A stretch of DNA of 64,000 nt, from the sequence record MK817115.1; one strand, written 5' to 3'. Under the pieces are notes generated by a model, which made no database searches, had not been told where the DNA came from, and saw only the letters and a list, made by a program, of their open reading frames with translations. Positions 1 to 64,000 of this stretch are shown here, piece by piece (position 1 is the stretch's first letter; the number at the start of each line of letters is the position of its first letter). The position numbers and the translations under genes were made by a program.

Positions 1-2
1 TT

Positions 3-1145
3 ATGTTACCTTTTGCAAGAATGGTTAAGTACGGGAATATTGCACCTGCACAAATCGGTAGATATAAAATATACAGTTCATCTTCTTCACTATTTTTATT
101 GGATACCCAAAAACACAATTTGTACAGTACATCGAACATTAATTATACTAGTGGTACAGGTAATGTTGAGCCTAAATTTGTGTTAAGTGCAACTAATGTT
201 AAAAGATTATTACTATCTGATAATAGTTGTGCAATGCAAATATATGAAGATATGAATGGGCGTGCAGCGATGTGTGGCACAAGAACTGCATATAGTGGGG
301 TTGCAAATGATAATGTACTGGTATGGACGGATTGCACTACATGGTTCACAAATGTAGGGTTGAATGTATCAGATATTCAGTACATGTCTGGTTTTTATAA
401 TCTGAAACTAAACATAGTTATGAATAATGGTGATTTGTGGTGTAGTGGGAAAAACAACACTACTACTATGTCATCATTTGGTAATAGCACAAATATCGAT
501 TCATTCAATCAGTTTACCAAAATAACAACAATATCAAATGTTATTAAAGCCACCGGGAATATATACTTATGTGCAGATAATACTTTATGGGGATGTGGTT
601 TTAACTCTTACTATCAGTTAGGGACAGGTAATCAAACATCCAGTATTAATTTGATTATGATGGCTTCTAATGTTATCGACTGTAATGTTGGTCTTCAAAA
701 TACTTATTACTTGACTAATAATAAAGAACTTTATGGATGTGGTACACAATTTGGTACAACTTACGGGAATGAATTTGGAACAGGAAGGCAGGGAACATCA
801 ATACAATATAAGACTCCTACTATAATTTTCACAAATGCAGATGGTCTGGCTGTTTGTGTCGGTAATATGTCTACTCATGTTATTCAATATGATAAAGTTT
901 TTAGTTCTGGTAATAATGCCCTTGCACAGTTGGGTGTAGGCAACCGTGACAATGTGTACACATATACACAATCATTTGATAATTTCAAAATGGATTCTTC
1001 TATAGTACGTGCAAACGTTGGAACATTGATAATGACAGCGGACAATAAGTTATATTACAGTGGGAGAAATGATGTTGTTATGGGTGGAACAAGCACACAA
1101 TACACGACGGTTTTCAGTGAAGTTAATATGTCATTTATACAATGA
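3..1145 (+). CDS. RCC1/BLIP-II-like beta-propeller, MLPF array member 1
   Basis: 380 aa, MLPFARMVKYGN start, GxNxxxQLGxG repeats (GFNSYYQLGTGN, GNNALAQLGVGN). Confidence 0.75.
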   Translation: MLPFARMVKYGNIAPAQIGRYKIYSSSSSLFLLDTQKHNLYSTSNINYTSGTGNVEPKFVLSATNVKRLLLSDNSCAMQIYEDMNGRAAMCGTRTAYSGVANDNVLVWTDCTTWFTNVGLNVSDIQYMSGFYNLKLNIVMNNGDLWCSGKNNTTTMSSFGNSTNIDSFNQFTKITTISNVIKATGNIYLCADNTLWGCGFNSYYQLGTGNQTSSINLIMMASNVIDCNVGLQNTYYLTNNKELYGCGTQFGTTYGNEFGTGRQGTSIQYKTPTIIFTNADGLAVCVGNMSTHVIQYDKVFSSGNNALAQLGVGNRDNVYTYTQSFDNFKMDSSIVRANVGTLIMTADNKLYYSGRNDVVMGGTSTQYTTVFSEVNMSFIQ

Positions 1146-1150
1146 ATTAA

Positions 1151-1217
1151 TGCCAGTACTTGATACTGGCTTTTCTTTTTTGTATTAAATATAGTATAAT
1201 GAATAAAGGAGGGAATT
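1151..1217 (+). repeat. Array intergenic module: hairpin terminator, TTTGTATTAAATATAGTATAATGAATAA, GGAGG RBS
   Basis: GCCAGTA-CTTGA-TACTGGC plus T-run, then near-invariant core. Confidence 0.9.
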
Positions 1218-2360
1218 ATGTTACCTTTTGCAAGAATGGTTAAGTACGGAAATGAAGCACCAGAACCAAAACCTCTATTTAAAAATAGATTACAAGCAAA
1301 TTATAATACTCGTTTTTATTTGCATGTTAATGGTGACTTGTACTGGTATGGTTCATCTTCATTTGGACAAGGTGGTAATGGTTCATTACAATCATCCACC
1401 GTATGGACCCGTGTGAATAATAATATTGAACGTTACTGGGGTGGTGTTCTTGGTTCCATTGCCATTAAGAATGATGGAACTATTTGGTTCACAGGTGCTA
1501 GTATAGTAATGCCACAAATCGGAACAAATACAAATGGGGTTTGGATTGATGTAACCCAGTACTTCACTGATTTTGGTGTCAGTGCTGATGATATTGATGG
1601 TATTGCTGTTGGACAGAATTTGCGTGTATTTTTGAAAAATGGAAAATGGTTCTACTGTGGTGCTGGCGAGGGTGGTGTATTTGGTAACGCATCAACAGCT
1701 AATGTCACATCGTTCAGATACAGCACTATAGAAAATGTTAAAAGTTATGGCTGTTCTTTGCTCAGTACTGGGTTAGTTCTTGATGATGGTTCCTATTGGT
1801 ATGCAGGAAATACTGTTGCTCCTGGTAGTACAACAACATCAAATATATTAAGTTTTACAAAAGACAATACGATCACCAATGCTATACAAGCTGTAAATAC
1901 ATACCGTACTTCATATATATTTCTTAATGATGGTTCAGTGAAGGTTGCTTCACCAAATGCATATGGTCAAGCTGGTGTAGGTAGAGTATCAGCAGTACCA
2001 ATGAGTACATTAATTCCCAATTTATCATTCCAAGGTGAAATAGAGTTGGTGGGTGGTTTATCCAACAACGAAGGGAATGGATGTGTTGTTAAAAATAATA
2101 ATAAGTTATATACTTGTGGTCGAAATACCTATGGTGCATGTGGTGTTAATCAAACATCCGAAAATATACTAACTTTCACCGAAATGGTTCTTGATGCATT
2201 AGAAGGAAGACGAATTTCAGGCTTCGTAATTGATAATTTCTATTCAATGATAATTGATGAAAATAACAATTTGTATATGAGTGGTTTGGCTGAACTTGGA
2301 AATGTTCCAGCCGTGAGAGTTCCAACCAGAGTCCCCGATTCCCTTCTACCGTGGAAATAA
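1218..2360 (+). CDS. RCC1-like beta-propeller, array member 2
   Basis: 380 aa, shared N-terminus, GRNTYGACGVN and YGQAGVG repeats, GGAGG RBS. Confidence 0.75.
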   Translation: MLPFARMVKYGNEAPEPKPLFKNRLQANYNTRFYLHVNGDLYWYGSSSFGQGGNGSLQSSTVWTRVNNNIERYWGGVLGSIAIKNDGTIWFTGASIVMPQIGTNTNGVWIDVTQYFTDFGVSADDIDGIAVGQNLRVFLKNGKWFYCGAGEGGVFGNASTANVTSFRYSTIENVKSYGCSLLSTGLVLDDGSYWYAGNTVAPGSTTTSNILSFTKDNTITNAIQAVNTYRTSYIFLNDGSVKVASPNAYGQAGVGRVSAVPMSTLIPNLSFQGEIELVGGLSNNEGNGCVVKNNNKLYTCGRNTYGACGVNQTSENILTFTEMVLDALEGRRISGFVIDNFYSMIIDENNNLYMSGLAELGNVPAVRVPTRVPDSLLPWK

Positions 2361-2367
2361 TGTAATA

Positions 2368-2433
2368 TGCCAGTACTTGATGCTGGCTTTTCTTTTTTGT
2401 ATTAAATATAGTATAATGAATAAGGAGGGATTT
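2368..2433 (+). repeat. Array intergenic module
   Basis: Same hairpin, core and RBS. Confidence 0.9.
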
Positions 2434-3543: not shown

Positions 3544-3548
3544 CATAA

Positions 3549-3613
3549 TGCCAGTGCTTGATACTAGCATTCTTATTTGTATTAAATATAGTATAATGAA
3601 TAAGGAGGGAAAT
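3549..3613 (+). repeat. Array intergenic module
   Basis: Same core; hairpin variant GCCAGTGCTTGATACTAGC. Confidence 0.88.
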
Positions 3614-5992: not shown

Positions 5993-5997
5993 ATATA

Positions 5998-6062
5998 TGC
6001 CAGTACTTGATACTGGCATTCTTATTTGTATTAAATATAGTATAATGAATAAGGAGGGAATT
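5998..6062 (+). repeat. Array intergenic module
   Basis: Same hairpin, core and RBS. Confidence 0.9.
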
Positions 6063-7260: not shown

Positions 7261-7324
7261 GCCAGTACAAAGTACTGGCTTTCTTATTTGTATTAAATAT
7301 AGTATAATGAATAAAGGAGGAAGT
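7261..7324 (+). repeat. Array intergenic module
   Basis: GCCAGTAC-AAA-GTACTGGC plus core. Confidence 0.9.
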
Positions 7325-8059: not shown

Positions 8060-8066
8060 AATATAG

Positions 8067-8131
8067 GCCAGTACTTTGTACTGGCTTTCTTATTTGTATT
8101 AAATATAGTATAATGAATAAGGAGGGGAATT
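8067..8131 (+). repeat. Array intergenic module
   Basis: GCCAGTAC-TTT-GTACTGGC plus core. Confidence 0.9.
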
Positions 8132-9289: not shown

Positions 9290-9355
9290 GCCAGTACTCA
9301 AGTACTGGCATTTCTTTTTGTATTAAATATAGTATAATGAATAAAGGAGGAATTT
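9290..9355 (+). repeat. Array intergenic module
   Basis: GCCAGTACT-CA-AGTACTGGC plus core. Confidence 0.9.
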
Positions 9356-10531: not shown

Positions 10532-10573
10532 AGGCACGAAATGTGTTTAGAAAGACACTATTAATTAACATAA

Positions 10574-10639
10574 TGCCAGTACTTGATACTGGCATTTCTT
10601 TTTGTATTAAATATAGTATAATGAATAAAGGAGGGATTT
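10574..10639 (+). repeat. Array intergenic module
   Basis: Same hairpin, core and RBS. Confidence 0.9.
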
Positions 10640-12952: not shown

Positions 12953-13019
12953 TGCCAGTACTCGATACTGGCTTTCTTATTTTGGATTAAATATAGTATA
13001 ATGAATAAAGGAGGGAATT
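12953..13019 (+). repeat. Array intergenic module
   Basis: Same hairpin; core TTTGGATTAAATATAGTATAAT. Confidence 0.9.
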
Positions 13020-15340: not shown

Positions 15341-15368
15341 ATCCAGTACTATTAAGTACTGGATTTTT
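15341..15368 (+). terminator. Hairpin built from two AGTACT sites, T-run on the + side
   Basis: ATCCAGTACT-ATTA-AGTACTGGAT-TTTT. Confidence 0.6.
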
Positions 15369-21316: not shown

Positions 21317-21751
21317 TTAGATCATAGAACGATAATACTCAGGTAACTCAACATCAGTAAATTTATACCACGTAGGCTTCATCTGGAGCTTCTCAATCAA
21401 ACGTTCACGAGACATTTTAATCTCTGACTCCGTTGGTATGTAGTCATTACAAAACTCAGCAGGGAAGCCGCTAATGTCGTTTACTTCAGTGTTTTGAATC
21501 TTCATACCACGACGCAGACATTCGTTGACAATATCAATATGACGCTTCTGTAAGTACAGTAACTTGTCGTAGAAAAATGTTACATGACCTGAACCTAACA
21601 GATAAGTACTGTTAATTTTGAAATCACGTACACGCTTACGTGCTTGAACGTGTTTTTGTACAGCACCAAATACACGTGGGAGTTCACGATATTCAGCCAT
21701 CAGATGTTGGTCAGCAAGTTCTTTAACGTGTACTAAGTTAATGCGTGTCAT
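21317..21751 (-). CDS. denV: Endonuclease V (pyrimidine dimer DNA glycosylase/AP lyase)
   Basis: MTRINL...[18 protein letters not shown]...[13 protein letters not shown] matches T4 endonuclease V. Confidence 0.95.
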
Positions 21752-21779
21752 GTATTCATCCTCTCGTTTCGATGAAATG

Positions 21780-21812
21780 ATTATAGCAAAAAGGGCCGAC
21801 TGAAGTCAACCC
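21780..21812 (-). promoter_or_regulatory. Terminator/promoter overlap cassette 3
   Basis: GGGTTGAC-TTCA-GTCGGCCC-TTTTTGCTATAAT. Confidence 0.85.
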
Positions 21813-21895
21813 TTTTTTTTTCTTTCAATCAAACATAGTCTACCAGAATGTACCATGCGATGGTGATTAGAACAAAGAATCATACACTTCTTCAT
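21806..21895 (-). pseudogene. Possible HNH nuclease C-terminal remnant
   Basis: 29-aa MKKCMILCSNHHRMVHSG resembles the LCxNxHxxxH tail of HNH domains. Confidence 0.4.
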
Positions 21896-21907
21896 TGTTT
21901 AATCCAT

Positions 21908-22177
21908 TTATTCAACAATCCCCAACTTCACAATCTCATACCCGTCCAGATAGCCGTAGGAACACTCAGGTGTTTCATAAGATGAACCATCATGGATGCC
22001 TTGGCATTGACTTTTGGAATTCTCAAGCAATCGTTGCAGTACTGATACGTCATCAAGAACGTAATACAAGTTAGCATATAGGTCAGTTACAATACAGTAC
22101 TCCAACATATCAAATGTATCAATCGAAATTTCAACCTTAGCAAATCGTTTCTTTTCTTTATTATACAGTGCGTACAT
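21908..22177 (-). CDS. Hypothetical protein
   Basis: Start MYALYNK (GGAG RBS); N-terminus resembles 24040..24294. Confidence 0.7.
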   Translation of the reverse strand: MYALYNKEKKRFAKVEISIDTFDMLEYCIVTDLYANLYYVLDDVSVLQRLLENSKSQCQGIHDGSSYETPECSYGYLDGYEIVKLGIVE

Positions 22178-22178
22178 A

Positions 22179-22550
22179 TTAATCTCCATAATCAAGTTTA
22201 ACCAACTTACCACACAGATACCCAAAGTTTTCTGGCTTCGCATCTGAATAGAAGAAGTCAGTACTTAACTCTGAATTCAATGCTAAAGCACACAACTCCA
22301 CCCAAAATAAACCCCTATGTTGTACTGGCTTACAACGTTTCTGTACAGTTACTAGTCCAGTACATGATGACCACAAAGTAGGACAGATACCAGTATCACT
22401 ACGCTTGGAGTACTGCATCCACGAACGTTCATTGAGGTTAGCTATCATCCCTGTTAAGAATAGCTTCCAACTTTTAAAGGTTGGAATCTTGATAGCGTAT
22501 TCCCCAATGAGGATAACAGTTCGGGTTGCACCTTTCAAATCTATATTCAT
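22179..22550 (-). CDS. Minimal protein-kinase-like protein
   Basis: GATRTV...YAIKIP, DAKPENFG, KLDYG motifs in 123 aa. Confidence 0.65.
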   Translation of the reverse strand: MNIDLKGATRTVILIGEYAIKIPTFKSWKLFLTGMIANLNERSWMQYSKRSDTGICPTLWSSCTGLVTVQKRCKPVQHRGLFWVELCALALNSELSTDFFYSDAKPENFGYLCGKLVKLDYGD

Positions 22551-22560
22551 ATTATTTTAA

Positions 22561-22812
22561 TTAGAAGAACACAAACCAAGTCCAGAATAAATTCCACACT
22601 ACAAATAAAGACATAGTGGTTTTATGTACAATATCAGCAGTACTGGTCCATCCTCCACCGTGTCCTATTCCATTTATGAATAGAACTAAGAACAAGATAC
22701 CATTTACTACAATAGTACATAGTAAGTACACAAACACATTCCATGCAAGTTCAGGGGATACTAACGTAAATGGTAAAACAATTAGTAGTATTAGAACTAA
22801 TAAAATTTTCAT
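22561..22812 (-). CDS. Small membrane protein
   Basis: 83 aa, hydrophobic. Confidence 0.65.
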   Translation of the reverse strand: MKILLVLILLIVLPFTLVSPELAWNVFVYLLCTIVVNGILFLVLFINGIGHGGGWTSTADIVHKTTMSLFVVWNLFWTWFVFF

Positions 22813-22840
22813 TTATCGCCTCACTTAATTAACGTGACAA

Positions 22841-23017
22841 TTAGTACGAATCAGATTCCCAGTACTCGATTGCTTCTTTCAGCAATTCTTTAGCACGTTG
22901 TTTTGCAATGCGAGCGGGTAACAGATATGTGTACATTAACTGACGCTTCACTTCATTCAGTGAAAGCTGTTCATGGTACAGTGCATCCATCAGTCGATTA
23001 CGAGTACGTAGTTTCAT
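22841..23017 (-). CDS. Hypothetical 58-aa protein (not in ORF track)
   Basis: MKLRTRNRLMDALYHEQ...YWESDSY*, AAGGA RBS, fills the gap. Confidence 0.6.
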   Translation of the reverse strand: MKLRTRNRLMDALYHEQLSLNEVKRQLMYTYLLPARIAKQRAKELLKEAIEYWESDSY

Positions 23018-23028
23018 ATAAGTTATCC

Positions 23029-23583
23029 TTATTTCAAAGAATCATAGTAAGCAGTGTCAAAGATTGGAGTCATAATAACATAGTCAATACGGTCAATGTA
23101 AGTTGAACTCCACATTTCTGGTTTGTCATAAAATTGACGTTCGCGTTCATTCATACGAGTCAGTACTTCTTCCAATTTACTACGTGAAGCCATCAATGTA
23201 TTACGCGATCCATAAGTGAAGTACTCAGTCCATTGATATTCATATTCAGTACTGATAGATTGAATAGTACCATCTTTGAAATGAGCTAATGCATAACCTT
23301 TCTCTACAAAGTTATCAGGTGGAAGAACACCATCTGGATTAGTTTTCAATGCTTTTTCTAACTTTTCTTTAATTTCAGTTAACGTGCATACTGAACGAAT
23401 GTTCTTCAGGTTTGATACTTGAAAATCACTGTACTTTCCAAAGAAAAATACACGCCAATCTTTAGGTTCATTATCAGATACGGTAACATCAGGATGATGG
23501 GCGAGTAAACGAAGAAGGCCAGCTTTGTGACCGTTAATGTAGATTTCATGGATGTGGTTAGCAGTTTTCTTAAAAGTAATCAT
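23029..23583 (-). CDS. Hypothetical protein
   Basis: 184 aa, GAGG RBS. Confidence 0.7.
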   Translation of the reverse strand: MITFKKTANHIHEIYINGHKAGLLRLLAHHPDVTVSDNEPKDWRVFFFGKYSDFQVSNLKNIRSVCTLTEIKEKLEKALKTNPDGVLPPDNFVEKGYALAHFKDGTIQSISTEYEYQWTEYFTYGSRNTLMASRSKLEEVLTRMNERERQFYDKPEMWSSTYIDRIDYVIMTPIFDTAYYDSLK

Positions 23584-23630
23584 GGTAGTTCCTCGATTGT
23601 AGGGATGAGAAGTTCATCCCCTTGATAAGC

Positions 23631-23658
23631 ATTATACAGTACTGAATGTGTTTGTCAA
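23631..23658 (-). promoter_or_regulatory. sigma70 promoter with CAGTACTG in the spacer
   Basis: TTGACA-AACACATTCAGTACTG-TATAAT. Confidence 0.75.
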
Positions 23659-23659
23659 C

Positions 23660-24040
23660 TCAAAATAAATTCATTTCATGTGCGTATTGTGGTTCAAGAT
23701 AAGATAAGTTTTTGAAACTGTCTTTCAATTCCGCATCATCTACGTACACAGTACCAGGTACATTCCCCATAGTGAAGCCAACCCAAACAGTCATGTTTCC
23801 AGTTCCTAAGCGGGGCATTGATAGCGTCCCGTCAGGTGAAACATCAAACGCTACACTAAAGTCATCCGTTACAACTTCCGAACCATTTTCCAGAATAATA
23901 CAACCACGTTCTTTAAGCTTCTGAATGTGGATAGCAGCCTCTACTGCACGTTTAAAGTTATAATAAGACTCTTTATCCTCGAACATTGATTGTTTAACCA
24001 GACGCTTGTTTAGCTCGGTTACTTTGTGCATTTGACGCAT
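23660..24040 (-). CDS. Hypothetical protein
   Basis: Probable start MRQMHK, coupled to the upstream stop. Confidence 0.65.
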   Translation of the reverse strand: MRQMHKVTELNKRLVKQSMFEDKESYYNFKRAVEAAIHIQKLKERGCIILENGSEVVTDDFSVAFDVSPDGTLSMPRLGTGNMTVWVGFTMGNVPGTVYVDDAELKDSFKNLSYLEPQYAHEMNLF

Positions 24041-24294
24041 TACTTCAACTCCCACAGTTGTAGAATTTCATAAGAGCCTGGTGGTGCTGGATTGATAATC
24101 TCAGGGTATTCAGTACTGTTAGGATTACCACCAGCATTGAACTCAGCAAGTAATAATTCGAGTTCATTCCTATCATGTACAACAAACACGCAATATCCAG
24201 TTCCTTCTTCAAGAACTGTAGTTGATCCCGCACAATCCCATACGGCATCAATACATAATAATTCTTTAGTGTTTTTATTACGCAACGCAAACAT
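24040..24294 (-). CDS. Hypothetical protein
   Basis: 84 aa, AGGAG RBS. Confidence 0.7.
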   Translation of the reverse strand: MFALRNKNTKELLCIDAVWDCAGSTTVLEEGTGYCVFVVHDRNELELLLAEFNAGGNPNSTEYPEIINPAPPGSYEILQLWELK

Positions 24295-24303
24295 ATATGT
24301 CTC

Positions 24304-24648
24304 CTATCGATTCGGCATATTCTTTCGTAGTCGCAAGAGAAATTCAACCACTGACCATGTTGTAATGAAGGCTATATAAGTTGCAAGGAATCCAGTAAGA
24401 ATAAATGCAACCAGCGTACTACCATTTGGGGAATCAGTTTTAATGCCGATGACACCATCGGCTACAGTGAAACATGTAGCCATTAATGTGTAACCTACGT
24501 ACAACACAAAGAAAAACTCATTCTCCATTGAAGGATAGAAACGGTTAAACACTTTATAAAATTTAAAGTACAGTAGGATTATACCAACAAAGGCATAGAA
24601 TGTAAACAGTGTTGTTATAATATATGAGATTAGGTTCAAATTATACAT
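24304..24648 (-). CDS. Small 3-TM membrane protein, paralogue cluster B
   Basis: Hydrophobic; ends LRKNMPNR. Confidence 0.72.
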   Translation of the reverse strand: MYNLNLISYIITTLFTFYAFVGIILLYFKFYKVFNRFYPSMENEFFFVLYVGYTLMATCFTVADGVIGIKTDSPNGSTLVAFILTGFLATYIAFITTWSVVEFLLRLRKNMPNR

Positions 24649-24649
24649 A

Positions 24650-24997
24650 TCAACGCTCCGGTAGATTATCACGTAATGTTTTAATTCGATGATACATTTT
24701 CATACCAATATTACCAAAGATACCATATCCAAGTACTAAAATGTATGCAATAAGCATAGTAATAATTACTATAGTGCCAAAACTATAATGTACACTACTG
24801 ATACCCATTGTAGTTTCAACGATTATTTGAGAAACTGAAAGAATCAAAAGTACAACTACAATTGGATGATTTGGGTACATTCGGTTGAACAACGTTTTGT
24901 ACTTAAAGAAGCACAGTACTCCACCGAATAAGAAGTAAACAATGTAAATGCAAGCAACAGCATAGGCAAACATGTTAGTGTAATAAATCATTACCAA
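24650..24997 (-). CDS. Small 3-TM membrane protein, cluster B
   Basis: Ends LRDNLPER. Confidence 0.72.
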   Translation of the reverse strand: MVMIYYTNMFAYAVACIYIVYFLFGGVLCFFKYKTLFNRMYPNHPIVVVLLILSVSQIIVETTMGISSVHYSFGTIVIITMLIAYILVLGYGIFGNIGMKMYHRIKTLRDNLPER

Positions 24998-25000
24998 TCC

Positions 25001-25339
25001 TTACTTTTCAGGGATATTAGAACGCCATATATCAATGCGATGAACTAGTCCAAAGAACAACCATACTGGAACGGCAGCTATCATAACAACAAATGAAAAC
25101 CCAGTCAAGACCGATACCAGATTTAATTCATCAGTACTATACCCACATATCAGTACTTCTAATATTCCCCACGTACATGCACAAAACATCAAGAATGAAA
25201 TTGGGGCATCATAGTAGATACGTTCATATAAAGTAGTGTATCGGAAGAATGCAATAATGTAGCAAAACATATAATACACCCAAACCAAAGATACTACATA
25301 AAATGATACTTTGTTTATTAATTCAAAATATTGTTCCAT
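25001..25339 (-). CDS. Small 3-TM membrane protein, cluster B
   Basis: Ends WRSNIPEK. Confidence 0.72.
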   Translation of the reverse strand: MEQYFELINKVSFYVVSLVWVYYMFCYIIAFFRYTTLYERIYYDAPISFLMFCACTWGILEVLICGYSTDELNLVSVLTGFSFVVMIAAVPVWLFFGLVHRIDIWRSNIPEK

Positions 25340-25341
25340 TT

Positions 25342-25623
25342 TTACCCCAATATATATTCAGAGAGTAATGTATTAGCTTCATCTTTGTTCTTAAGGTAAT
25401 ACATGTAATATAGATTCGGTTCACCATCTTTAGAACTCAAATCGAAGTTCTTTAAACTATGTACTTTCATAGTAAAAACAAATAATGACTTAAAACCAAT
25501 CTCACCGTACTTAATAAACAGTTCATCCAAATGAATGTAACTTTTTGATTTGGATAATTCTTTAACGTCTGCATCAATTTCAGATAAAAGATGCTTACCT
25601 ATTAAGTTTTCAAATGAACGCAT
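25342..25623 (-). CDS. Hypothetical protein
   Basis: 93 aa in the operon. Confidence 0.65.
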   Translation of the reverse strand: MRSFENLIGKHLLSEIDADVKELSKSKSYIHLDELFIKYGEIGFKSLFVFTMKVHSLKNFDLSSKDGEPNLYYMYYLKNKDEANTLLSEYILG

Positions 25624-25684
25624 GATTTTATCCTTTACCGCAATTTTTATGGTTTATTAAGAATACACCAGAACATCAGTTCTG

Positions 25685-26326
25685 TCAATAAAAAACTGGA
25701 TCTTCTTCAGTAACTGGTATTTCTCTACGTACATCACACGAAAGAGGATCAGTAATGAATACATTGCCATCTTTATCCATCATGACATTACTGGAATGAA
25801 TGTCTGGTACAAAACGCCCGTGAAACTCTTTCATGATGTTAGCAGCGACCGTCGCAATAGCAATCTCTTCAGAATTACCACGCATATCATTCACTGAAGT
25901 AGCGTACTGACCAGCATGTGCATAAGAATATAAATCTCCAATTTTAGTACTAACAAAGTCATCATAATTATTTTTTTGTTTAATTATAGGATAGTACTTG
26001 TCCATCTCATACCATCCAAAGTTTCCTTGTTCGTTTGCACTGTAGATCACTGGAAGAAACTTGGTTCCTGCGTTTTCAATGCAGTACTTTGCATAAGCAC
26101 GAAAACCATCCCAGCGTGAAGTGGTTACTTTAAATGCACGTCCAGGATAGTTTTTATGTTCAACTACTACAGAGTACATCCCCATTCCAAGCAAAGTAAG
26201 TCCAGCAGCTTTAACTTGTGGAAAGATTACGCGTTCAGCATAAGGAATATCAAACTCCATCGCACAACGAGTTTTTGATGGACGCAAAATGTCAATTAAA
26301 GTTTTGAATATTTCTTGCTTAGTCAT
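25685..26326 (-). CDS. Ser/Thr protein kinase, T7 gp0.7-like
   Basis: LGMGMYSVV, RAFKV, DGFRAYAKYC, DIHSSNVM, FITDP; start MTKQEIF after GAGG. Confidence 0.8.
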   Translation of the reverse strand: MTKQEIFKTLIDILRPSKTRCAMEFDIPYAERVIFPQVKAAGLTLLGMGMYSVVVEHKNYPGRAFKVTTSRWDGFRAYAKYCIENAGTKFLPVIYSANEQGNFGWYEMDKYYPIIKQKNNYDDFVSTKIGDLYSYAHAGQYATSVNDMRGNSEEIAIATVAANIMKEFHGRFVPDIHSSNVMMDKDGNVFITDPLSCDVRREIPVTEEDPVFY

Positions 26327-37944: not shown

Positions 37945-37973
37945 ATTATACTGCTATTATTCAGTACTGTCAA
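37945..37973 (-). promoter_or_regulatory. sigma70 promoter with CAGTACTG overlapping the -35
   Basis: TTGACA-GTACTGAATAATAGCAG-TATAAT. Confidence 0.75.
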
Positions 37974-38293: not shown

Positions 38294-38321
38294 ATTATAC
38301 AGTACTGATATCTTCTGTCAA
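38294..38321 (-). promoter_or_regulatory. sigma70 promoter with CAGTACTG in the spacer
   Basis: TTGACA-GAAGATATCAGTACTG-TATAAT. Confidence 0.75.
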
Positions 38322-40703: not shown

Positions 40704-41669
40704 TTAGAAATCTTCGTATTCGTACCCTTTTGCAAGTACTAACTTCTTAAGCTTTTGCATAGCTTCACTGTACTTTCGGTGTATTGATGAACGGGATTTA
40801 ACATATTTTCCATTATCATCAACAAAACCATTATCAGCAATCTCACGAAGCGTTTCAGGTTCATATTCACCTAGACCATGAACACGCTGGATAATCTCAC
40901 GTTCTTTAGTACTCAATTCGTTAGTTAGTTCATTGATAGCATAACGTAAAGGTGCACGGATACTATCAACATTGAGGTTAAAATCAGAAGCAGGTGAATG
41001 AATAATGTCACCTAATGTACCATCTGTAACACCGTCTAATGGTGCATCCAGTGAAGTGTATTCGCTTTGAAATAATAAACAATTATTAACATGCTGAATC
41101 TCAATCCCAGTACCCTCTGAGATTATTTCAGGTGTTGGGCGAACACCATGTTTACGCATATATTCCTGGCAGAATCTTTTTACTTTGATCTTATGAACAC
41201 TCATATAACGTGGGAAGTGTACCATATAGTTAGCGTCAGAACTTTCGTTATAAACTGTCATGTAAATACTAGAAGAAGCATAGGTAATGAACTTCACATT
41301 CTTATTAAGATCAAAGGTTTTTAGTGCTCTCATGAACCCCTCAACACCATATGAAATCTTATCTTCAAATGGGATATAACAAGTACATTTACTTGCTACA
41401 TCAATAATAAGTCCATAATTGTAACGAACTAACAGTTCAGTGTTTTTCTTTACATTGATACCAGCTTGAATATCACGAATTAGATCTTCATTGGAAACAT
41501 TTGGTGGTCGCTTAAGTGTAATATTATATTTGAAACTGCTTTGTACTTTACCTTCATTTTCATCTTTATCTTCAACGAAATCTAAGGCTTCTAGTGTGTT
41601 GACTTCTTCATTAGCAAAACATTCATCCAGAACTTCTTCGGCAATTGTATTTAAATCAAGCTTTTTCAC
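40704..41669 (-). CDS. sigma70-family RNA polymerase sigma factor (RpoD/RpoS-like regions 2-4, divergent)
   Basis: LVRYNYGLII..A; GFMRALKTFD...KFITYA; RPTPEII; SLDAPL; LSTKEREII..HGL..ETLREIA; GTG start with AGGAG. Confidence 0.88.
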   Translation of the reverse strand: MKKLDLNTIAEEVLDECFANEEVNTLEALDFVEDKDENEGKVQSSFKYNITLKRPPNVSNEDLIRDIQAGINVKKNTELLVRYNYGLIIDVASKCTCYIPFEDKISYGVEGFMRALKTFDLNKNVKFITYASSSIYMTVYNESSDANYMVHFPRYMSVHKIKVKRFCQEYMRKHGVRPTPEIISEGTGIEIQHVNNCLLFQSEYTSLDAPLDGVTDGTLGDIIHSPASDFNLNVDSIRAPLRYAINELTNELSTKEREIIQRVHGLGEYEPETLREIADNGFVDDNGKYVKSRSSIHRKYSEAMQKLKKLVLAKGYEYEDF

Positions 41670-52939: not shown

Positions 52940-53029
<90 letters not shown>

Positions 53030-53032
53030 AGA

Positions 53033-53142
<110 letters not shown>

Positions 53143-53194
53143 GCCAAGAGTCGGCATAGGTGCAGCACTACAAAGTTCTTCAAGCTGCTTGGTA

Positions 53195-53226
<32 letters not shown>

Positions 53227-53227
53227 T

Positions 53228-53284
<57 letters not shown>

Positions 53285-53286
53285 TA

Positions 53287-53837
<551 letters not shown>

Positions 53838-53846
53838 TAATACCCG

Positions 53847-54248
53847 CTAGTAGTTTAAGTCTGCGGCGTTGAATACACCAAGTGAAGTCTTACCACGTAG
53901 TTTAGGTGAAAGGACATACTTTGTCAATTTCTTTTTACCGTACCAGCGATTGAATTCGTCTTCAGTGACATATGGGTTCTGGAAATCGTATTCGCGTTTC
54001 TTATGCAGTTCTTTAGCACGTTCTGCAATCTTGGTTCGTTGGTCTTCTGGAATGTCGAATGTATTGTTACGTTCACACCATTCGTGCTCTAATGCACCCT
54101 GAAGAAACTGTTCGGTTTCTTTGACTAGAGTGATTTTAGTCAAGCCTTTTTCGATGTTCATATAATCATCGACGTATCCATTCCAAATAACAATCTCTGG
54201 ATTGCCGTCAATTTCTTGAAGCATTTTGATCAAGTCATTCTTTTTCAT
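53847..54248 (-). CDS. Hypothetical protein
   Basis: MKKNDLIKMLQEIDGNPEI. Confidence 0.72.
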   Translation of the reverse strand: MKKNDLIKMLQEIDGNPEIVIWNGYVDDYMNIEKGLTKITLVKETEQFLQGALEHEWCERNNTFDIPEDQRTKIAERAKELHKKREYDFQNPYVTEDEFNRWYGKKKLTKYVLSPKLRGKTSLGVFNAADLNY

Positions 54249-54256
54249 TTAAATTC

Positions 54257-54514
<258 letters not shown>

Positions 54515-54535
54515 TTATACCTCTCATTGTTTATG

Positions 54536-54607
<72 letters not shown>

Positions 54608-54611
54608 TAAT

Positions 54612-55219
<608 letters not shown>

Positions 55220-55270
55220 ATAAACCTCACTATACGTAACTTACACCATATACGTCTGATTGTGGAATTC

Positions 55271-55295
55271 ATTATATCAGTACTGAACTATTTAG

Positions 55296-55299
<4 letters not shown>
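55271..55299 (-). promoter_or_regulatory. Repeated promoter, copy 2
   Basis: TTGACT-AAATAGTTCAGTACTGA-TATAAT. Confidence 0.85.
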
Positions 55300-55709
<410 letters not shown>

Positions 55710-55718
55710 CTTTTTTTT

Positions 55719-55880
<162 letters not shown>

Positions 55881-55884
<4 letters not shown>

Positions 55885-56045
55885 AATCGTACCAGTAGTT
55901 CAATTAAGTACATTTCATATGCTGGATCGTTGATAAGTTTATCATACAGATGTGGCTCTGAAATGAATTCCCAATGATACTTTAGCCATCTACCGATACC
56001 CGAATATCTAAAATTAATGTCATTCATCCATTCTTCATGTGTCAT
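55881..56045 (-). CDS. MTHEEW microprotein (54 aa, not in ORF track)
   Basis: MTHEEWMNDINFRYSGIGRWLKYHW...ELLVRL*. Confidence 0.7.
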
Positions 56046-56206
56046 AATCGTACCATTATTTCAATAAAGAACCACGGATACACTTCATGATTCATAAGTT
56101 TATCGTATTCTGCTGGGTCTGATATGATTTCCCAATGATACTTTAGCCAACTACCGATACCCGAATATCTAAAATTAATGTCATTCATCCATTCTTCATG
56201 CGTCAT
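56042..56206 (-). CDS. MTHEEW microprotein (54 aa, not in ORF track)
   Basis: MTHEEWMNDINFRYSGIGSWLKYHW...EIMVRL*, AAGG RBS. Confidence 0.7.
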   Translation of the reverse strand: MTHEEWMNDINFRYSGIGSWLKYHWEIISDPAEYDKLMNHEVYPWFFIEIMVRL

Positions 56207-56229
56207 GGTTTTTAACCTTTAATTAAAAT

Positions 56230-56306
56230 TGGCCGAGGTAGAGGGACTTGAACCCCCAACCTAGAGATTAGAATTCTCTTGCACTATCCAATTGTGCTAT
56301 ACCCCG
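56230..56306 (-). tRNA. tRNA-Arg(UCU)
   Basis: CGGGGTA/TACCTCG-GCCA, A20, loop AT-TCT-AA. Confidence 0.9.
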
Positions 56307-56310
56307 TATT

Positions 56311-56426
<116 letters not shown>

Positions 56427-56459
56427 ATGTTATGTCCCATTATATAATGAATTAATGAT

Positions 56460-56678
56460 TTATGCAAGTGCTTTAGATACACCGACACCAATAATTCCAG
56501 TGATATCGATATGGATATTGGCAAGTTGATTACTATCATATGGGTTTGTTTCTGTAATAACCAATGTTGTATCATTGACTAAAACCACAGTACCTTTTAC
56601 ACGATAACCATGTAGTAGTACTTGAACCTCATCTTCAGGTTTTAATGATTGAATAACTTCAAATAAAGTTGTTTCCAT
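56460..56678 (-). CDS. Small beta-rich protein, possibly Sm/SH3-like
   Basis: Start METTLF; EVQVLL..V.GTVV.V.DTTLVI..HIDI..I.GV. Confidence 0.55.
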   Translation of the reverse strand: METTLFEVIQSLKPEDEVQVLLHGYRVKGTVVLVNDTTLVITETNPYDSNQLANIHIDITGIIGVGVSKALA

Positions 56679-56694
56679 TTTTTGTATTCCTTGT

Positions 56695-56877
56695 TTAGTT
56701 TTGATTATTTGACTTTCTAAATGCCAGTTCGCATATAAACCAGGGTTTTCTGGTATCCAAAACATATGACCTGAAAAGATTTTCATCTCTTAATATATCA
56801 TAATGTACCTGACGAATGCCATTCCCAAAGCAGTCATGTTCTTTATGCTGTTTGGACATCCATTCTTCGTGTGTCAT
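56695..56877 (-). CDS. MTHEEW microprotein
   Basis: MTHEEWMSKQHKEHDCFGNG...WFICELAFR. Confidence 0.7.
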   Translation of the reverse strand: MTHEEWMSKQHKEHDCFGNGIRQVHYDILRDENLFRSYVLDTRKPWFICELAFRKSNNQN

Positions 56878-56878
56878 T

Positions 56879-57214
<336 letters not shown>

Positions 57215-59580: not shown

Positions 59581-59602
59581 TACTTCTCCTATTGGATGTT
59601 TT

Positions 59603-60399: not shown

Positions 60400-60464
60400 T
60401 TATAAATCCTCTTACTTTATATGATTAAAATGCCCCATCAAAAATGATGAGGCGGTAAGATAAA

Positions 60465-60674: not shown

Positions 60675-60789
60675 TTTAATACCCTTTTATTTCTTTTTTA
60701 TGAAAAACCCTCATCATTGAGGAATGGTTTGCATTTTAATATCTGCCGATAACAAACATTATATCACAATATCTGTTCTTGTCCAATGT

Positions 60790-61086
60790 TTAATTATTAG
60801 AAAGAACAATTTTTGAAACTGGTAAATCTGTATTATTTACACGTTCTTCATTATATCCATTCTGTACAAGAATGTCAATAACTTTAGACTTATCAATTGT
60901 AAATGATTCTAACATATCATATCGGTAATAACCAATAGTCTGACTGAACTCATATTTTCCTGGCTGTTGACGACAACACGTATTTGTTTCAGCCATAATC
61001 TTATTGATTAGGTAATATGTTTCAGTACTATCAATATTTGGAATATAGATCTTATCATCAAAATGAATTACTTCATGTTTATTCAT
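60790..61086 (-). CDS. Hypothetical protein
   Basis: Probable start MNKHEVI after GGAG. Confidence 0.6.
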   Translation of the reverse strand: MNKHEVIHFDDKIYIPNIDSTETYYLINKIMAETNTCCRQQPGKYEFSQTIGYYRYDMLESFTIDKSKVIDILVQNGYNEERVNNTDLPVSKIVLSNN

Positions 61087-61348
61087 AGAGTGATTCAATC
61101 TCCGCTTTAAGAATGGAAATGATCTCTTTCTGAAGGCCAGTAATTTCACTGTTCAAAGATGATAGTCGCTTCGATAATGCCATGAATTGCTTTGCATCTT
61201 CTTTAGAACGGTCATTTCGTACTTTATCAGAACTCCAGTTAGCATATGATTGCTCATCTTTCCTGTTAAGGATATCCCAGTCTAAACGTACTAGTTTACG
61301 TTCTTTCTTCAGTTCGCTTAAGTGAGATTTCATTTCGTCTTTAGTCAT
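61079..61348 (-). CDS. Coiled-coil hypothetical protein
   Basis: 89 aa. Confidence 0.65.
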   Translation of the reverse strand: MTKDEMKSHLSELKKERKLVRLDWDILNRKDEQSYANWSSDKVRNDRSKEDAKQFMALSKRLSSLNSEITGLQKEIISILKAEIESLYE

Positions 61349-61638
61349 TAGATTGTTCCTTTCATGAAGTCTGGAATAACGATTACGATAGGAGGATTAT
61401 ACTCTACATAACCATTTTTTGTCAATAGACTTTTAATATCTGAAATCACATTATCATGCTGTTCAATATCTTTATCACAAAAGATTTCCAATTCTTTCTG
61501 AAACGGTTTTTTAACCGAGATGTTTTGAGTCAGTGTTTGGATTCTCTGTAACATATCAATTGGATCTGGACTGAACTCATTACCAACATAAAGAGTACCA
61601 GATGCATCTTTTTCTAGCAAGACTTCTAAAATTTTCAT
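61348..61638 (-). CDS. Hypothetical protein
   Basis: 96 aa. Confidence 0.65.
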   Translation of the reverse strand: MKILEVLLEKDASGTLYVGNEFSPDPIDMLQRIQTLTQNISVKKPFQKELEIFCDKDIEQHDNVISDIKSLLTKNGYVEYNPPIVIVIPDFMKGTI

Positions 61639-62471
61639 TTCGTATCCTTCAATTTACTAAAGTTTTCTCGTGTAAATCCAGGAACTGGAAAATATACATC
61701 ACAGTCAACATCAGGATTCATAATTACCATGTCATTACATATTATATCACGAATTTTACTGCCGTCCACGATTTTTTGCATTAAATCATTCCATTTTTTA
61801 CGAGAAATAACGAATGTACTAATTATACATAAATCATGTCCACGTTTTGAAATATATCCTAGTACTTCATTATCGTAAACAACACGTATGGTAACTTTTC
61901 CAATTGTAACCCCTCTTACTGGATTAATACTAGTATCTTCAAAAATTAGTTCTAATTTAAGTTTACCATTCGAAATAAGTGATGAAGTATATTTAGAAAC
62001 CATTTTATCAATTTCTTGAGTCAAATCATCTCTACCTAGATATTCAAATACAGAATAAGTTAATTCGTCTGCACCTAACTGTTGGATAGTTGGAAGCTGT
62101 GCAACCATATCTAAAGATACAGGTTCGATATATATTCTTTCAATATCAGAAGATTGTACAAATAGACAACCATCAGGTGTCGTATCTCTAACAATTTCGG
62201 CATAATATGTATAAAGATAAAAAACATTAGACTCGGATGAGTCAGTTTCTACCCAAATCTCAGATTGTTTCATTTCATCTTTATGAAGAATTCGTTGAGT
62301 AAATCCTATGTAAAAACCAAGATATAAATCATCATCAGTTTCAAACGGATTAAACATCAAATACGGATATTTGTCAAGGTACTCATTGAACTTACGCTGT
62401 ACATCTCTATCACAATCCATGATATACTTTCGGAATTCAGAAATGATTATTTTTTCTAATGACATAATCAA
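61635..62471 (-). CDS. Hypothetical protein
   Basis: 278 aa, GAGG RBS. Confidence 0.7.
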   Translation of the reverse strand: MIMSLEKIIISEFRKYIMDCDRDVQRKFNEYLDKYPYLMFNPFETDDDLYLGFYIGFTQRILHKDEMKQSEIWVETDSSESNVFYLYTYYAEIVRDTTPDGCLFVQSSDIERIYIEPVSLDMVAQLPTIQQLGADELTYSVFEYLGRDDLTQEIDKMVSKYTSSLISNGKLKLELIFEDTSINPVRGVTIGKVTIRVVYDNEVLGYISKRGHDLCIISTFVISRKKWNDLMQKIVDGSKIRDIICNDMVIMNPDVDCDVYFPVPGFTRENFSKLKDTK

Positions 62472-62665
62472 TCCTCAAGATGCATGTAGTACATAAACAT
62501 CGCCAACCATATAAAAAACCCGAAACAACGAAGTAAAATATCAATTGTTGGATCTGTCCCACCATTAACTTGGTAAACGATTACTGGGATTAAAGCAATA
62601 GTAATAGACACAGCACATAAGATGAATGCAACAAACACCTCAAACATAAACTTAATCGTTTCCAT
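62468..62665 (-). CDS. 2-TM membrane protein
   Basis: 65 aa, hydrophobic hairpin. Confidence 0.65.
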   Translation of the reverse strand: METIKFMFEVFVAFILCAVSITIALIPVIVYQVNGGTDPTIDILLRCFGFFIWLAMFMYYMHLED

Positions 62666-63224
62666 TATTATCCTTCAATGTGTAGTGTAGTACATCTAAA
62701 AAGTTATACATTGATTCATTACGCACAACCTTGATTGTTAAATTACGACAACCCAACATACGTTTGAGGCGACGCTTCACCGCAGTTAAATCATGTGTAC
62801 TATTCGTATACAGACCATTAACCTGACCTGGAACAGTTGGCACATGAAGAATGTAATCATAATTCATTAGTAAGCGTTGATTATATTTCTTTAATGCTTG
62901 CTTGTATTCTGAAATATTTTCAAAGAATGTACAATAACGGTCGTAACGATTCATTTTATTCAAAATTGAAATACGAAAAGCGTTACCACTATTCCAATCA
63001 TCTTCAGTTGGGTTTGGGTTGATATGTGCCATGTTAGCTGTACTGTACCCACCACTTGTGAAAACTTCAGAATATCCATTCTCAAAAACATACAATGTTG
63101 CTTTGTGGCCTCTGAATTCTTTACGGTACTTTGACAGTACTTGGATGTGATTACGCTTGGACTTGTACATTTCGTAACCTTCATAATCTGAACTGAATTC
63201 ACAAATTTTATCAACACCAGCCAT
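62652..63224 (-). CDS. Hypothetical protein
   Basis: 190 aa, GAGG RBS; TTGACA-17nt-TATAAT at about 63257-63285. Confidence 0.72.
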   Translation of the reverse strand: MAGVDKICEFSSDYEGYEMYKSKRNHIQVLSKYRKEFRGHKATLYVFENGYSEVFTSGGYSTANMAHINPNPTEDDWNSGNAFRISILNKMNRYDRYCTFFENISEYKQALKKYNQRLLMNYDYILHVPTVPGQVNGLYTNSTHDLTAVKRRLKRMLGCRNLTIKVVRNESMYNFLDVLHYTLKDNNGND

Positions 63225-63281
63225 TTCGTATATCCTCGTTTAATTAATATAGGAGTATTATACATACTCCATTTTCATGTG

Positions 63282-63425
63282 TCAAGCTTTATAATACGGA
63301 AGACTTTTTACTAAAGATTCAGACGTATTATTTTTTACCCATGTACTACCGTTGTCATTAGATACGTATCCAGTACCATTAATAAATTTACGCATAATAC
63401 CAGTAAAAATATTAGTATACACCAT
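63282..63425 (-). CDS. 47-aa hypothetical protein (not in ORF track)
   Basis: MVYTNIFTGIMRKFINGTGYVSNDNGSTW..., TAATG coupling. Confidence 0.5.
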   Translation of the reverse strand: MVYTNIFTGIMRKFINGTGYVSNDNGSTWVKNNTSESLVKSLPYYKA

Positions 63426-63595
63426 TACTCAGTATCCTTTGGTTTAGAATGTAAACCATACTTTTCATCATAACGATCATAGGTAGTACCATTAGTACTA
63501 GCTTTGATGCTTTCAGTACGATTGATTGGTTCAATCTTAACACCACGATAACCAATCTCTTCTTTAAATTGTTCCCATGATTCACGTAAACTCAT
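63425..63595 (-). CDS. Hypothetical protein
   Basis: Start MSLRESW. Confidence 0.6.
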   Translation of the reverse strand: MSLRESWEQFKEEIGYRGVKIEPINRTESIKASTNGTTYDRYDEKYGLHSKPKDTE

Positions 63596-63609
63596 TTTAG
63601 CCCCTTTTG

Positions 63610-63753
63610 TTATTTCATACACTCACGTAGGTCAATCTTTTCAACTGAACCACCGAGTACTAGATAGTGAAAATTAGAATCTTTGTTTGCCATATTCAAA
63701 AGATCTGCTTTCTGTTGAAGCGTAAAGCGTGAAGTACTGTTACGTACTGGCAT
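63610..63753 (-). CDS. 47-aa hypothetical protein (not in ORF track)
   Basis: MPVRNSTSRFTLQQKADLL..., AAGGAG RBS. Confidence 0.6.
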   Translation of the reverse strand: MPVRNSTSRFTLQQKADLLNMANKDSNFHYLVLGGSVEKIDLRECMK

Positions 63754-63755
63754 AG

Positions 63756-63998
63756 TTACTCCTTAAAGTAGATATCACGAATTTGTTTAATCATCTCTAA
63801 CTCTTGAAGTCCTATCATACCAAAGTCTTCTTGTATTGTCAACTGCTGAAAGTACATTTCTTCTAAATTATTGTACGGAATCTCAACAAGATTCAAAGGC
63901 TCACTTTCCACACGATAAATTGTATCTTGTACATCATGCTTTTCGATATGAATACTAAATGTATCTTTTTGAATTCTAAATTTATAAAATGTTTGATT
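63756..63998 (-). CDS. EExxFQxS-motif family protein, 3' part (runs off the window)
   Basis: ...YNNLEEMYFQQLTIQEDFGMIGLQEL...YFKE*. Confidence 0.7.
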   Translation of the reverse strand, partial: NQTFYKFRIQKDTFSIHIEKHDVQDTIYRVESEPLNLVEIPYNNLEEMYFQQLTIQEDFGMIGLQELEMIKQIRDIYFKE

Positions 63999-64000
63999 TG

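Follow-up and report, generated by a model that had tools for sequence, protein, structure and literature searches.

We have found that the palindrome AGTACT is iterated throughout a 64-kb stretch of phage DNA (hereafter the window), which represents bases 1–64,000 of Escherichia phage vB_EcoM_phAPEC6 (MK817115.1, Asteriusvirus; sequence identical). phAPEC6 is a RaK2-like jumbo myovirus with a genome of 352,598 bp, and the motif analysis has been extended to its whole record (352.6 kb). Overall, the results establish AGTACT as a selected signal shared across the clade of RaK2-like jumbo phages and spread over their genomes. Its palindromic form, together with its enrichment in intergenic space and ahead of transcription starts, makes DNA its most probable level of action, not RNA or protein.

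In the window, AGTACT occurs 180 times (2.8/kb) and is spread throughout, while base composition predicts 21.9 copies. It ranks first among the 4096 hexamers, ahead of CAGTAC (115), TTCTTT (108) and TTTTTT (105), and its extended form CAGTACTG is the top octamer (37 copies) of this sequence with 34% G+C. Markov models of orders 1, 2, 3 and 4 give expectations of 19.6, 37.1, 71.2 and 142.7 for the hexamer, and of 0.9, 2.3, 5.2 and 13.4 for the octamer, respectively; the high-order values are inflated because they absorb the pentamers and other sub-words of AGTACT itself. These counts agree well with a preliminary description of the window, which had estimated about 40 AGTACT in the first 15.4 kb (exactly 45) and about 35 CAGTACTG in 64 kb against fewer than one expected (exactly 37, with 0.9 expected at order 1). 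Genome-wide, there are 918 copies of AGTACT versus 119.5 expected and 198 of CAGTACTG, each being the top word of its length. The density of 2.6/kb corresponds to one site per 384 bp. The flanks show a preference, with C at position −1 in 48% of the genomic sites, G there in just 6%, and G at +1 in 43%; further out T and A are preferred, which gives a weak extended form TTCAGTACTGAA. AGTACTGT and ACAGTACT are also among the common octamers, and the flanking contexts of the sites are varied. Among the words of the type xGTACy, the A..T form has 918 copies and the T..A form 197, while G..C and C..G have none.

To place the sites relative to genes, 584 open reading frames (ORFs) covering 90% of the genome were called by a greedy method. 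In the window, 145 AGTACT sites fall within ORFs (2.6/kb) and 34 outside (4.1/kb); in the genome the numbers are 754 (2.4/kb) and 157 (4.6/kb), the intergenic space being the class of highest density. When synonymous codons are shuffled within each gene, so that protein and codon usage are preserved, 225±13 sites are expected in the ORFs of the genome, versus 756 observed (z = 40), and codon permutation lowers the expectation to 132±12 (z = 54). For CAGTACTG, 166 copies in ORFs are observed versus 17.9 and 4.6, respectively. Frames 0, 1 and 2 hold 378, 149 and 227 of the 754 coding sites. Although frame 0, which reads AGT-ACT (Ser-Thr), contains 378 of them, it is enriched only about 3-fold, like the other frames: the enrichment over shuffles is 3- to 4-fold in every frame, and 3.6- to 4-fold in frames 1 and 2. 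Its occurrence in every frame and in intergenic space shows that AGTACT is not a peptide motif.

The preliminary description had warned that Ser-Thr-rich proteins could inflate the count, and had proposed a codon-preserving shuffle and a Markov model as checks. The Ser-Thr frame does hold more coding sites than either other frame, but it is not the cause of the excess, which remains under both checks (z = 40–54). More generally, one might ascribe the excess to Ser-Thr-rich proteins, to codon or dicodon usage, or to repeated genes, considering that half of the coding sites are in frame 0 and that one terminator design is reused by a family of RCC1-repeat genes in the window. The z values, the enrichment in frames 1 and 2, the high intergenic density and the diverse contexts flanking the sites all argue against it, and we regard such an artefact as extremely improbable. 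Its codon, amino-acid and dicodon versions are ruled out by the two shuffles together with the frame and intergenic counts.

Palindrome avoidance is a textbook trait of phages, and phAPEC6 follows it: 23 of the 64 hexamer palindromes, all of them G+C-rich, are at zero copies in its genome, as are GCGC, CCTNAGG, CYCGRG, GCCN5GGC and the type IIS site GGTCTC/GAGACC. These zero-copy sites indicate that phAPEC6 DNA is under strong restriction pressure, which has been answered mainly by site loss. The enrichment of AGTACT runs against this pressure. Phages outside the clade avoid the word. The phi92-like coliphage PHB05 has no AGTACT in 35 kb versus 11.9 expected (P = 7e-6), and 62 other, unrelated phage loci together contain 100 versus 310 expected (0.32x). 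E. coli K-12 itself is neutral in a 50-kb sample (11 copies versus 12.6 expected, ~0.2/kb), so that AGTACT is about 12 times denser in phAPEC6 than in this sample. As a separate observation, the RaK2 fragment avoids palindromes far less than the other genera do (2 at zero versus 16–24).

Within the clade, AGTACT is enriched 6- to 9-fold in homologous 41–46-kb stretches of all tested RaK2-like genera, i.e., in two other Asteriusvirus species, Klebsiella phage RaK2 (Alcyoneusvirus), Serratia phage BF (Eneladusvirus), Cronobacter phage GAP32 (Mimasvirus) and Xanthomonas phage XaC1. For the three of these that were compared with synonymous shuffles (RaK2, BF and XaC1), z is 14–19. The signal is thus shared by five or more phage genera whose hosts differ, and since the enrichment tracks the phage from Escherichia to Xanthomonas hosts, the phage itself most likely encodes the reader. 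Among metagenomic relatives retrieved by their major capsid protein, the excess is seen at capsid identities of at least 85% and weakly at 72%, while no AGTACT enrichment is present at 64–69%. The proposal in the preliminary description that the signal is phage-specific is therefore borne out, in that the excess is confined to the RaK2-like clade and other phages avoid the word.

On the other hand, one distant relative iterates a different palindrome. In IMGVR_UViG_3300044959_000303 (L031), whose capsid protein is 65% identical, TTCGAA occurs 68 times in 21 kb versus 7.1 expected, in all frames and with z = 9.5 over synonymous shuffling, and there are 313 copies of its core TCGA. Such a switch between AGTACT and TTCGAA would be expected if the specificity of a protein can change. 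Two unrelated phage contigs also carry iterated palindromes in varied contexts: GGATCC with 16 copies in 12 kb versus 1.4 expected (L166), and CAATTG with 23 in 13.6 kb versus 4.0 (L152). Iterated palindromes may therefore be a recurrent trait of phages.

We have further compared the positions of the sites between relatives in codon alignments of 40 orthologue groups, 15 of which are present in all seven phages. The proportion of phAPEC6 AGTACT sites kept in place is 77% in Ec-M-J (control hexamers 40%, P = 2e-8), 53% in A4 (32%), 41% in RaK2 (17%, P = 3e-5), 41% in BF (16%, P = 7e-5), 31% in GAP32 (17%) and 24% in XaC1 (12%), with binomial P values from 2e-8 to 0.07 over the comparisons. Where the amino acids are unchanged, retention is 59–88% versus 36–50% for controls. 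By chance, independent sites would overlap in only ~0.1 shared sites per pair. That is, AGTACT sites are maintained by selection and are conserved about twice as well as controls. Many sites are also private to each lineage, which indicates turnover.

The one-mismatch neighbours AGTATT and AATACT are not depleted in the genome (observed/expected 0.9–1.4), and no C-to-T excess is seen among the one-mismatch variants opposite AGTACT sites in relatives. The former counts against methyl-directed short-patch repair (VSP-type), which would drain these neighbours, and on both grounds we have rejected such biased repair as the source of the sites. Taken together, the site conservation, the undepleted neighbours and the missing C-to-T signature favour purifying selection over an origin in biased repair; for the cyanobacterial palindrome HIP1, site conservation has likewise been taken as an argument for selection (Xu et al. 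2018). We thus consider it very unlikely that the excess is a functionless by-product of biased mutation or repair, although Elhai has proposed a repair-based origin for HIP1 and the lineage-private sites do show turnover. Apart from the conservation and the undrained neighbours, the fixed positions of promoter boxes and the sharp borders of the AGTACT-free stretches, which are conserved between phages 20% diverged, speak against it (both described below).

All 157 intergenic sites of the genome have been listed, and two settings recur, i.e., early promoters and terminators. The early promoters are of the sigma-70 type, and the AGTACT box either touches the −35 element (AAAAAGTACTTGCA...) or directly precedes the −10 (AGTACTgTATAAT); some of them carry both boxes, 20–23 bp apart, and the spacing peak of box pairs at this distance derives from these promoters. 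Of 74 consensus-like minus-strand promoters in the genome, 35 have AGTACT between −47 and −7, where it abuts the −35 in 17 and the −10 in 15. The box thus takes a fixed position relative to −35 and −10 in the promoter set, as an operator would.

The examples in the window are all on the minus strand. A promoter of the form TTGACA-N17-TATAAT at 23631–23658 has AGTACT at 23638–23643, directly upstream of the −10 (AGTACTgTATAAT). Two consensus promoters with 12/12 matches lie at 37945–37973, where AGTACT (37963–37968) overlaps the last base of the −35 (TTGACAGTACT), and at 38294–38321, where it abuts the −10 (38301–38306). The promoter at 54811–54844 carries two boxes 20 bp apart, one abutting the −35 (54839–54844) and one before the −10 (54819–54824). 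With 11/12 matches, the promoter at 55271–55299 has its box in the spacer before the −10 (55279–55284), and a twin of it lies at 55681–55708 (AGTACT 55688–55693).

The second intergenic setting is seen at 1–15.4 kb, in terminators with arms GCCAGTAC and GTACTGGC that follow the RCC1-repeat genes. In the terminator-like hairpin at 1152–1170 (plus strand), after one such gene, the arms are GCCAGTA and TACTGGC and AGTACT spans arm and loop; the same design recurs at 2369–2387, 5997–6019, 10572–10596 and 12954–12972. The hairpin at 8065–8087 (plus strand; arms GCCAGTAC / GTACTGGC) resembles the extended palindrome opened up by a loop, with similar hairpins at 7261–7279, 9290–9309 and 15341–15364. 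Terminator-like sites number 20, versus 6.5±2.6 in shuffles. One further copy (57160–57165) is located within a tRNA-Gly gene (57120–57192, minus strand). Each of the settings named in the preliminary description, i.e., genes on both strands, promoter spacers, terminator stems and a tRNA, has thus been found again.

Several neighbouring features have been observed as well. The first 15,400 bases of the window are occupied by the RCC1-repeat family gp001–gp010, in which a near-identical terminator hairpin and a shared downstream sequence TTTCTTATTTGTATTAAATATAGT follow each gene; this family also explains a local excess of GGTGGT-type hexamers. Seven tRNA genes (Thr, Asn, Met, Ser x2, Arg and Gly) are interleaved with strong consensus promoters at 52,950–57,192, and a phage gene of the sigma-70 family lies at 40,704–41,669.

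Outside the window, the longest AGTACT-free stretch of the genome (309,065–316,764, ~8 kb) is an island of a one-stranded variant. It contains 38 TGTACT on the plus strand, i.e., AGTACA on the coding strand, and 0 in the opposite orientation. Of the AGTACA copies, 33 are in called ORFs with frames of 12/11/10, at 3-fold over synonymous shuffles and in varied contexts, while AGTAC on the other strand occurs at most once versus 7.5 expected (P = 0.005). The pattern is kept in 121Q and in Ec-M-J, the latter being 79% identical there; both have 0 AGTACT over ~8 kb, and Ec-M-J holds 46 TGTACT. The conservation of individual island sites is marginally over background (53% versus 39%, P = 0.07). The island has sharp borders and is restricted to Asteriusvirus, and the Pfam and PHROGs scans of its 16 genes gave no known function. 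Outside the island the asymmetric forms are enriched just 1.2–1.35x, equally in both orientations, compared with 3.1–3.5x for the palindrome.

The distribution of AGTACT also follows the repeated genome end. In the Ec-M-J record, positions 1–21,525 are annotated as a direct terminal repeat, inside which AGTACT reaches 5–9/kb; the density is zero for ~5 kb right after it, the motif returns for ~3 kb, and then the one-stranded variant replaces it at 29–37 kb. The matching early region of phAPEC6, 324.5–346.1 kb, has the highest density of the genome, 7.0 AGTACT/kb. The AGTACT-free 5 kb is an array of tiny paralogous genes (phAPEC6 319,424–324,424; Ec-M-J 21,600–26,000), which begins exactly at the inner border of the 21.5-kb direct terminal repeat. 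This second AGTACT-free stretch has a few AGTACA copies, pointing the opposite way to those of the island. We give little weight to this flip of polarity because several copies are at equivalent positions of paralogous small genes, and the idea that the flip near 318 kb is the signature of a replication origin is weakened for the same reason.

Another oriented word has accumulated in the same genome. The E. coli Chi sequence GCTGGTGG has 27 copies on both strands of phAPEC6 versus ~1.9 expected, five of them in the window (7484, 7739, 7994, 24128 and 40465), and 9 of the 11 copies in the Ec-M-J terminal repeat have the same orientation. This suggests that oriented Chi protects the genome end from RecBCD. 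From the accumulation of host Chi it follows that iterated protective words are in use in the phAPEC6 genome.

A genome search for methyltransferases, which the preliminary description had called for when suggesting AGTACT as a cognate methyltransferase target, has found two enzymes: gp123c, a C5-cytosine methyltransferase of 286 aa encoded just past the window (66,071–66,931), and gp394c, an N6-adenine methyltransferase of the Dam family. gp123c is the only C5 methyltransferase conserved across the clade, with orthologues of 64–100% identity in the Asteriusvirus, RaK2, GAP32 and CBB groups, two Erwinia phages and Xanthomonas phage XbC2. Its best matches among solved structures (PDB) are the catalytic domains of the CpG-specific DNMT3A/B/C, over the full length with E ~1e-23, and with E. 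coli Dcm it has the catalytic motifs alone in common; a homologue search returned no informative names. The nearest homologue outside the clade, 51% identical and with 43 extra residues in the variable region, belongs to phi92-like phages, and the phage carrying it avoids AGTACT (no copies). In RaK2, methylated CpG has been reported from bisulfite treatment, the data not being shown there (PMC3622015). As AGTACT has no CpG, gp123c is unlikely to read or write the motif. Judged from these comparisons, the conserved C5 methyltransferase is probably not the AGTACT reader, and we have set it aside as the cognate enzyme. The suggestion of a cognate methyltransferase target is thereby weakened.

Some additional observations concern the distribution of these enzymes. 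The protein gp123c is compact and DNMT3-like, and A4, ph0011, UE-S1, JNE01, TH47 and two Salmonella isolates match only residues ~78–112 to 286; since the partial match is at a single place in these Asteriusvirus records, the gene is split or truncated there. No C5 enzyme is annotated at 262–311 kb of Serratia phage BF, of which 95 kb were covered, and an IMG/VR scan for the methyltransferase of the TTCGAA phage returned just RaK2 and distant small phages.

Considering all of the above, we tentatively propose that a symmetric sequence-specific DNA-binding or modifying protein recognises phage DNA through AGTACT and controls transcription from early promoters. As the motif is a perfect palindrome, its reader would be a protein of the phage with two-fold symmetry that recognises it on double-stranded DNA, and may be either a sequence-specific DNA-binding protein or a modifying enzyme. 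With 2.6 sites/kb in the genome and 7/kb in the early region of the terminal repeat, compared with ~0.2/kb in the 50-kb K-12 sample, such a protein could tell phage from host DNA. Occupancy of the boxes beside or overlapping −35 or −10 would then control sigma-70 transcription, e.g., in the shut-off of early genes. The enrichment, the spread over frames, the clade distribution, the conservation, the promoter positions and the island are observed, while the protein nature, the phage coding and the role of this reader are inferred. Several observations weigh against the proposal. Only ~4% of the AGTACT sites are in promoters, and a regulator has no obvious need for 750 conserved sites inside genes. 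The sites favour no particular distance from start or stop codons, and their spacing along genes is near-Poisson over the short range examined. Among ~40 candidate proteins, Pfam and PHROGs scans detected no DNA-binding or nuclease domain linked to the motif. In addition, the one-stranded AGTACA island is unexplained by a purely symmetric reader and hints at a strand-specific component.

A broader reading, which is possible though somewhat unlikely in our view, is that AGTACT is a written code of self-identification, placed every few hundred bases on both strands, by which a phage machine tells its own 350-kb genome from that of the host. The machine could be a protective protein coating the DNA, or a replication or nuclease enzyme that reads strands. 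The AGTACA island and the AGTACT-free stretch at the inner border of the terminal repeat would be regions where the code has to be read one way or else left unread, and relatives may have rewritten it to another word, e.g., TTCGAA. A separate idea is that a phage enzyme travelling along one strand reads AGTAC(T/A) there as the functional word. The enzyme could be a primase for which it marks start sites on the lagging-strand template, or a Chi-like regulator of a helicase-nuclease that spares phage DNA; the palindrome would be the cheapest way of writing the word on both strands. The island at 309–317 kb, with its 38 versus 0 strand bias, its lack of AGTACT, its use of all frames and its preservation in 121Q and Ec-M-J, argues for this. 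One site per 384 bp is also comparable in order to the spacing of Okazaki fragments, the enrichment goes with the phage and not the host, the distant relative has a different motif, and host Chi has accumulated too (27 versus ~1.9). Known primases, however, read trinucleotides and need no hexamer. Furthermore, the asymmetric forms are barely enriched and orientation-neutral outside the island (1.2–1.35x), the palindromic genome-wide form carries no polarity information, the polarity flip of the second AGTACT-free stretch stems mostly from paralogous gene copies, and the conservation of island sites is marginal. We thus hold such a polar word to be distinctly unlikely.

AGTACT might instead be the target of an orphan methyltransferase of the phage, as in the HIP1 model. 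The mark would shield the 918 sites from ScaI-type enzymes, and might in addition serve as an epigenetic label of self or as a promoter switch, or give rise to sites by methyl-directed repair. In its favour, the genome encodes gp123c and gp394c, gp123c orthologues are widespread in the clade, a genome that purges palindromes could hardly leave 918 AGTACT unprotected, the contigs iterating GGATCC and CAATTG were found through a C5 methyltransferase homologue, and alternate HIPs of cyanobacteria track cognate methyltransferases (Elhai 2015). Against it, gp123c is closest to the CpG-specific DNMT3A/B/C, and the DNA of RaK2 is reported as CpG-methylated while AGTACT lacks CpG. The undepleted neighbours and the absence of a C-to-T excess again count on this side, and phage A4 keeps the enrichment although its gp123c is N-terminally missing or split. 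Moreover, 5-methylation of the C in AGTACT gives A-m5C, a target of McrBC, which strain MG1655 possesses. The relative Sharanji was nevertheless isolated and propagated on MG1655 (Sharanji paper). On balance a methyl mark is unlikely. We find hardly credible the remaining idea that the sites recruit a host protein, i.e., SlmA through the AGTACT core or LexA through the half-site TACTGT. AGTACT does lie within the SlmA consensus GTGAGTACTCAC, and AGTACTGT and ACAGTACT are common octamers. But the 12-bp SlmA site GTRAGYRCTYAC, in which G, T, A and G are essential at positions 1, 2, 4 and 5, has 0 copies in the 352.6-kb genome, which leads us to reject a hijack of SlmA, and the purine required at position 3 is disfavoured (GAGTACTC 4 versus CAGTACTG 198; G at −1 in 6%). 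For LexA, inspection of the listed promoter contexts showed half-sites only and no complete boxes, and the enrichment holds in a Xanthomonas phage too. As further readings, the preliminary description had named a packaging signal and a nucleoid-protein site. The weight left over goes to mechanisms outside those considered.

The significance of the motif lies in a contrast: 23 hexamer palindromes are purged from the genome, yet AGTACT, which other phages avoid, is the commonest hexamer across genera and hosts. This implies a reader protein and a genome-wide function in the RaK2-like phages, a group in which ~83% of genes are unannotated. We came across no report of the motif in the papers on phAPEC6, CBB, Sharanji and RaK2 or in full-text searches. 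Four of the features described here go beyond what the preliminary description anticipated: the fixed promoter positions, the density peak in the terminal repeat, the AGTACT-free island with its one-stranded AGTACA, and the iterated TTCGAA of a distant relative. Neither hypermodified bases nor a phage nucleus are known from the RaK2-like jumbo phages. If AGTACT is a self mark, it would constitute a third route, beside base modification and the phage nucleus, by which large phages distinguish or shield their DNA, and it would offer a small, tractable model of the 30-year-old HIP1 puzzle that grows on laboratory E. coli. In addition, AGTACT is a simple signature for spotting RaK2-like contigs in metagenomes, and places where it is missing point to unusual regions, e.g., the island and the stretch beside the terminal repeat.

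Among known systems, the uptake sequences of Haemophilus (USS) and Neisseria (DUS) occur about once per kb, in all frames and as inverted pairs in terminators, and mark the own DNA of the species. AGTACT resembles them in its iteration, its presence in all frames of genes and in terminators, and its proposed role in own-DNA recognition, but USS and DUS are non-palindromic 9–12-mers read by the competence receptor of a cell; we know of nothing comparable in phages. Chi, too, is a short word in excess, by which a processive enzyme recognises DNA as self, and the AGTACA island is strictly one-stranded as Chi is relative to replication. Chi is always asymmetric and read by the host RecBCD, however, while the phage motif is mainly a palindrome. 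The targets of ScaI-type enzymes have the identical sequence AGTACT, which other phages avoid; for such a target depletion is expected, whereas AGTACT is enriched 8-fold and no matching methyltransferase or endonuclease has been found. The SlmA sites share the AGTACT core, and their palindrome is read by a dimeric helix-turn-helix protein, but the outer bases that SlmA requires are absent around the phage AGTACT.

The closest known system is HIP1 (GCGATCGC) with its alternates, as the preliminary description had proposed when citing it as the precedent. Both are short perfect palindromes that are hyper-abundant over composition and codon nulls, in all frames and between genes. HIP1 sites are conserved between genomes, implying selection (Xu et al. 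2018), and related cyanobacterial lineages use different palindromes (Elhai 2015), as L031 does here with TTCGAA. AGTACT shows most of the tested features that define a HIP-type word: abundance over nulls, occurrence in all frames and intergenic space, site conservation, and a palindrome switch in a relative. On the other hand, HIP1 is cellular and GC-rich, while AGTACT is viral and an AT-rich 6-mer that extends to an 8-mer. The cyanobacterial word shows a long-range periodic spacing of 10–90 kb; for AGTACT the analysis covered short-range spacing, which is near-Poisson with the promoter-derived peak at 20–23 bp. AGTACT has no evident cognate methyltransferase (the C5 enzyme of the clade looks CpG-specific), and the genome that iterates it otherwise purges palindromes. 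AGTACT is therefore a viral iterated palindrome with features that HIP1 does not show, i.e., boxes fixed in early promoters, a strand-specific variant island and a link to the terminal repeat.

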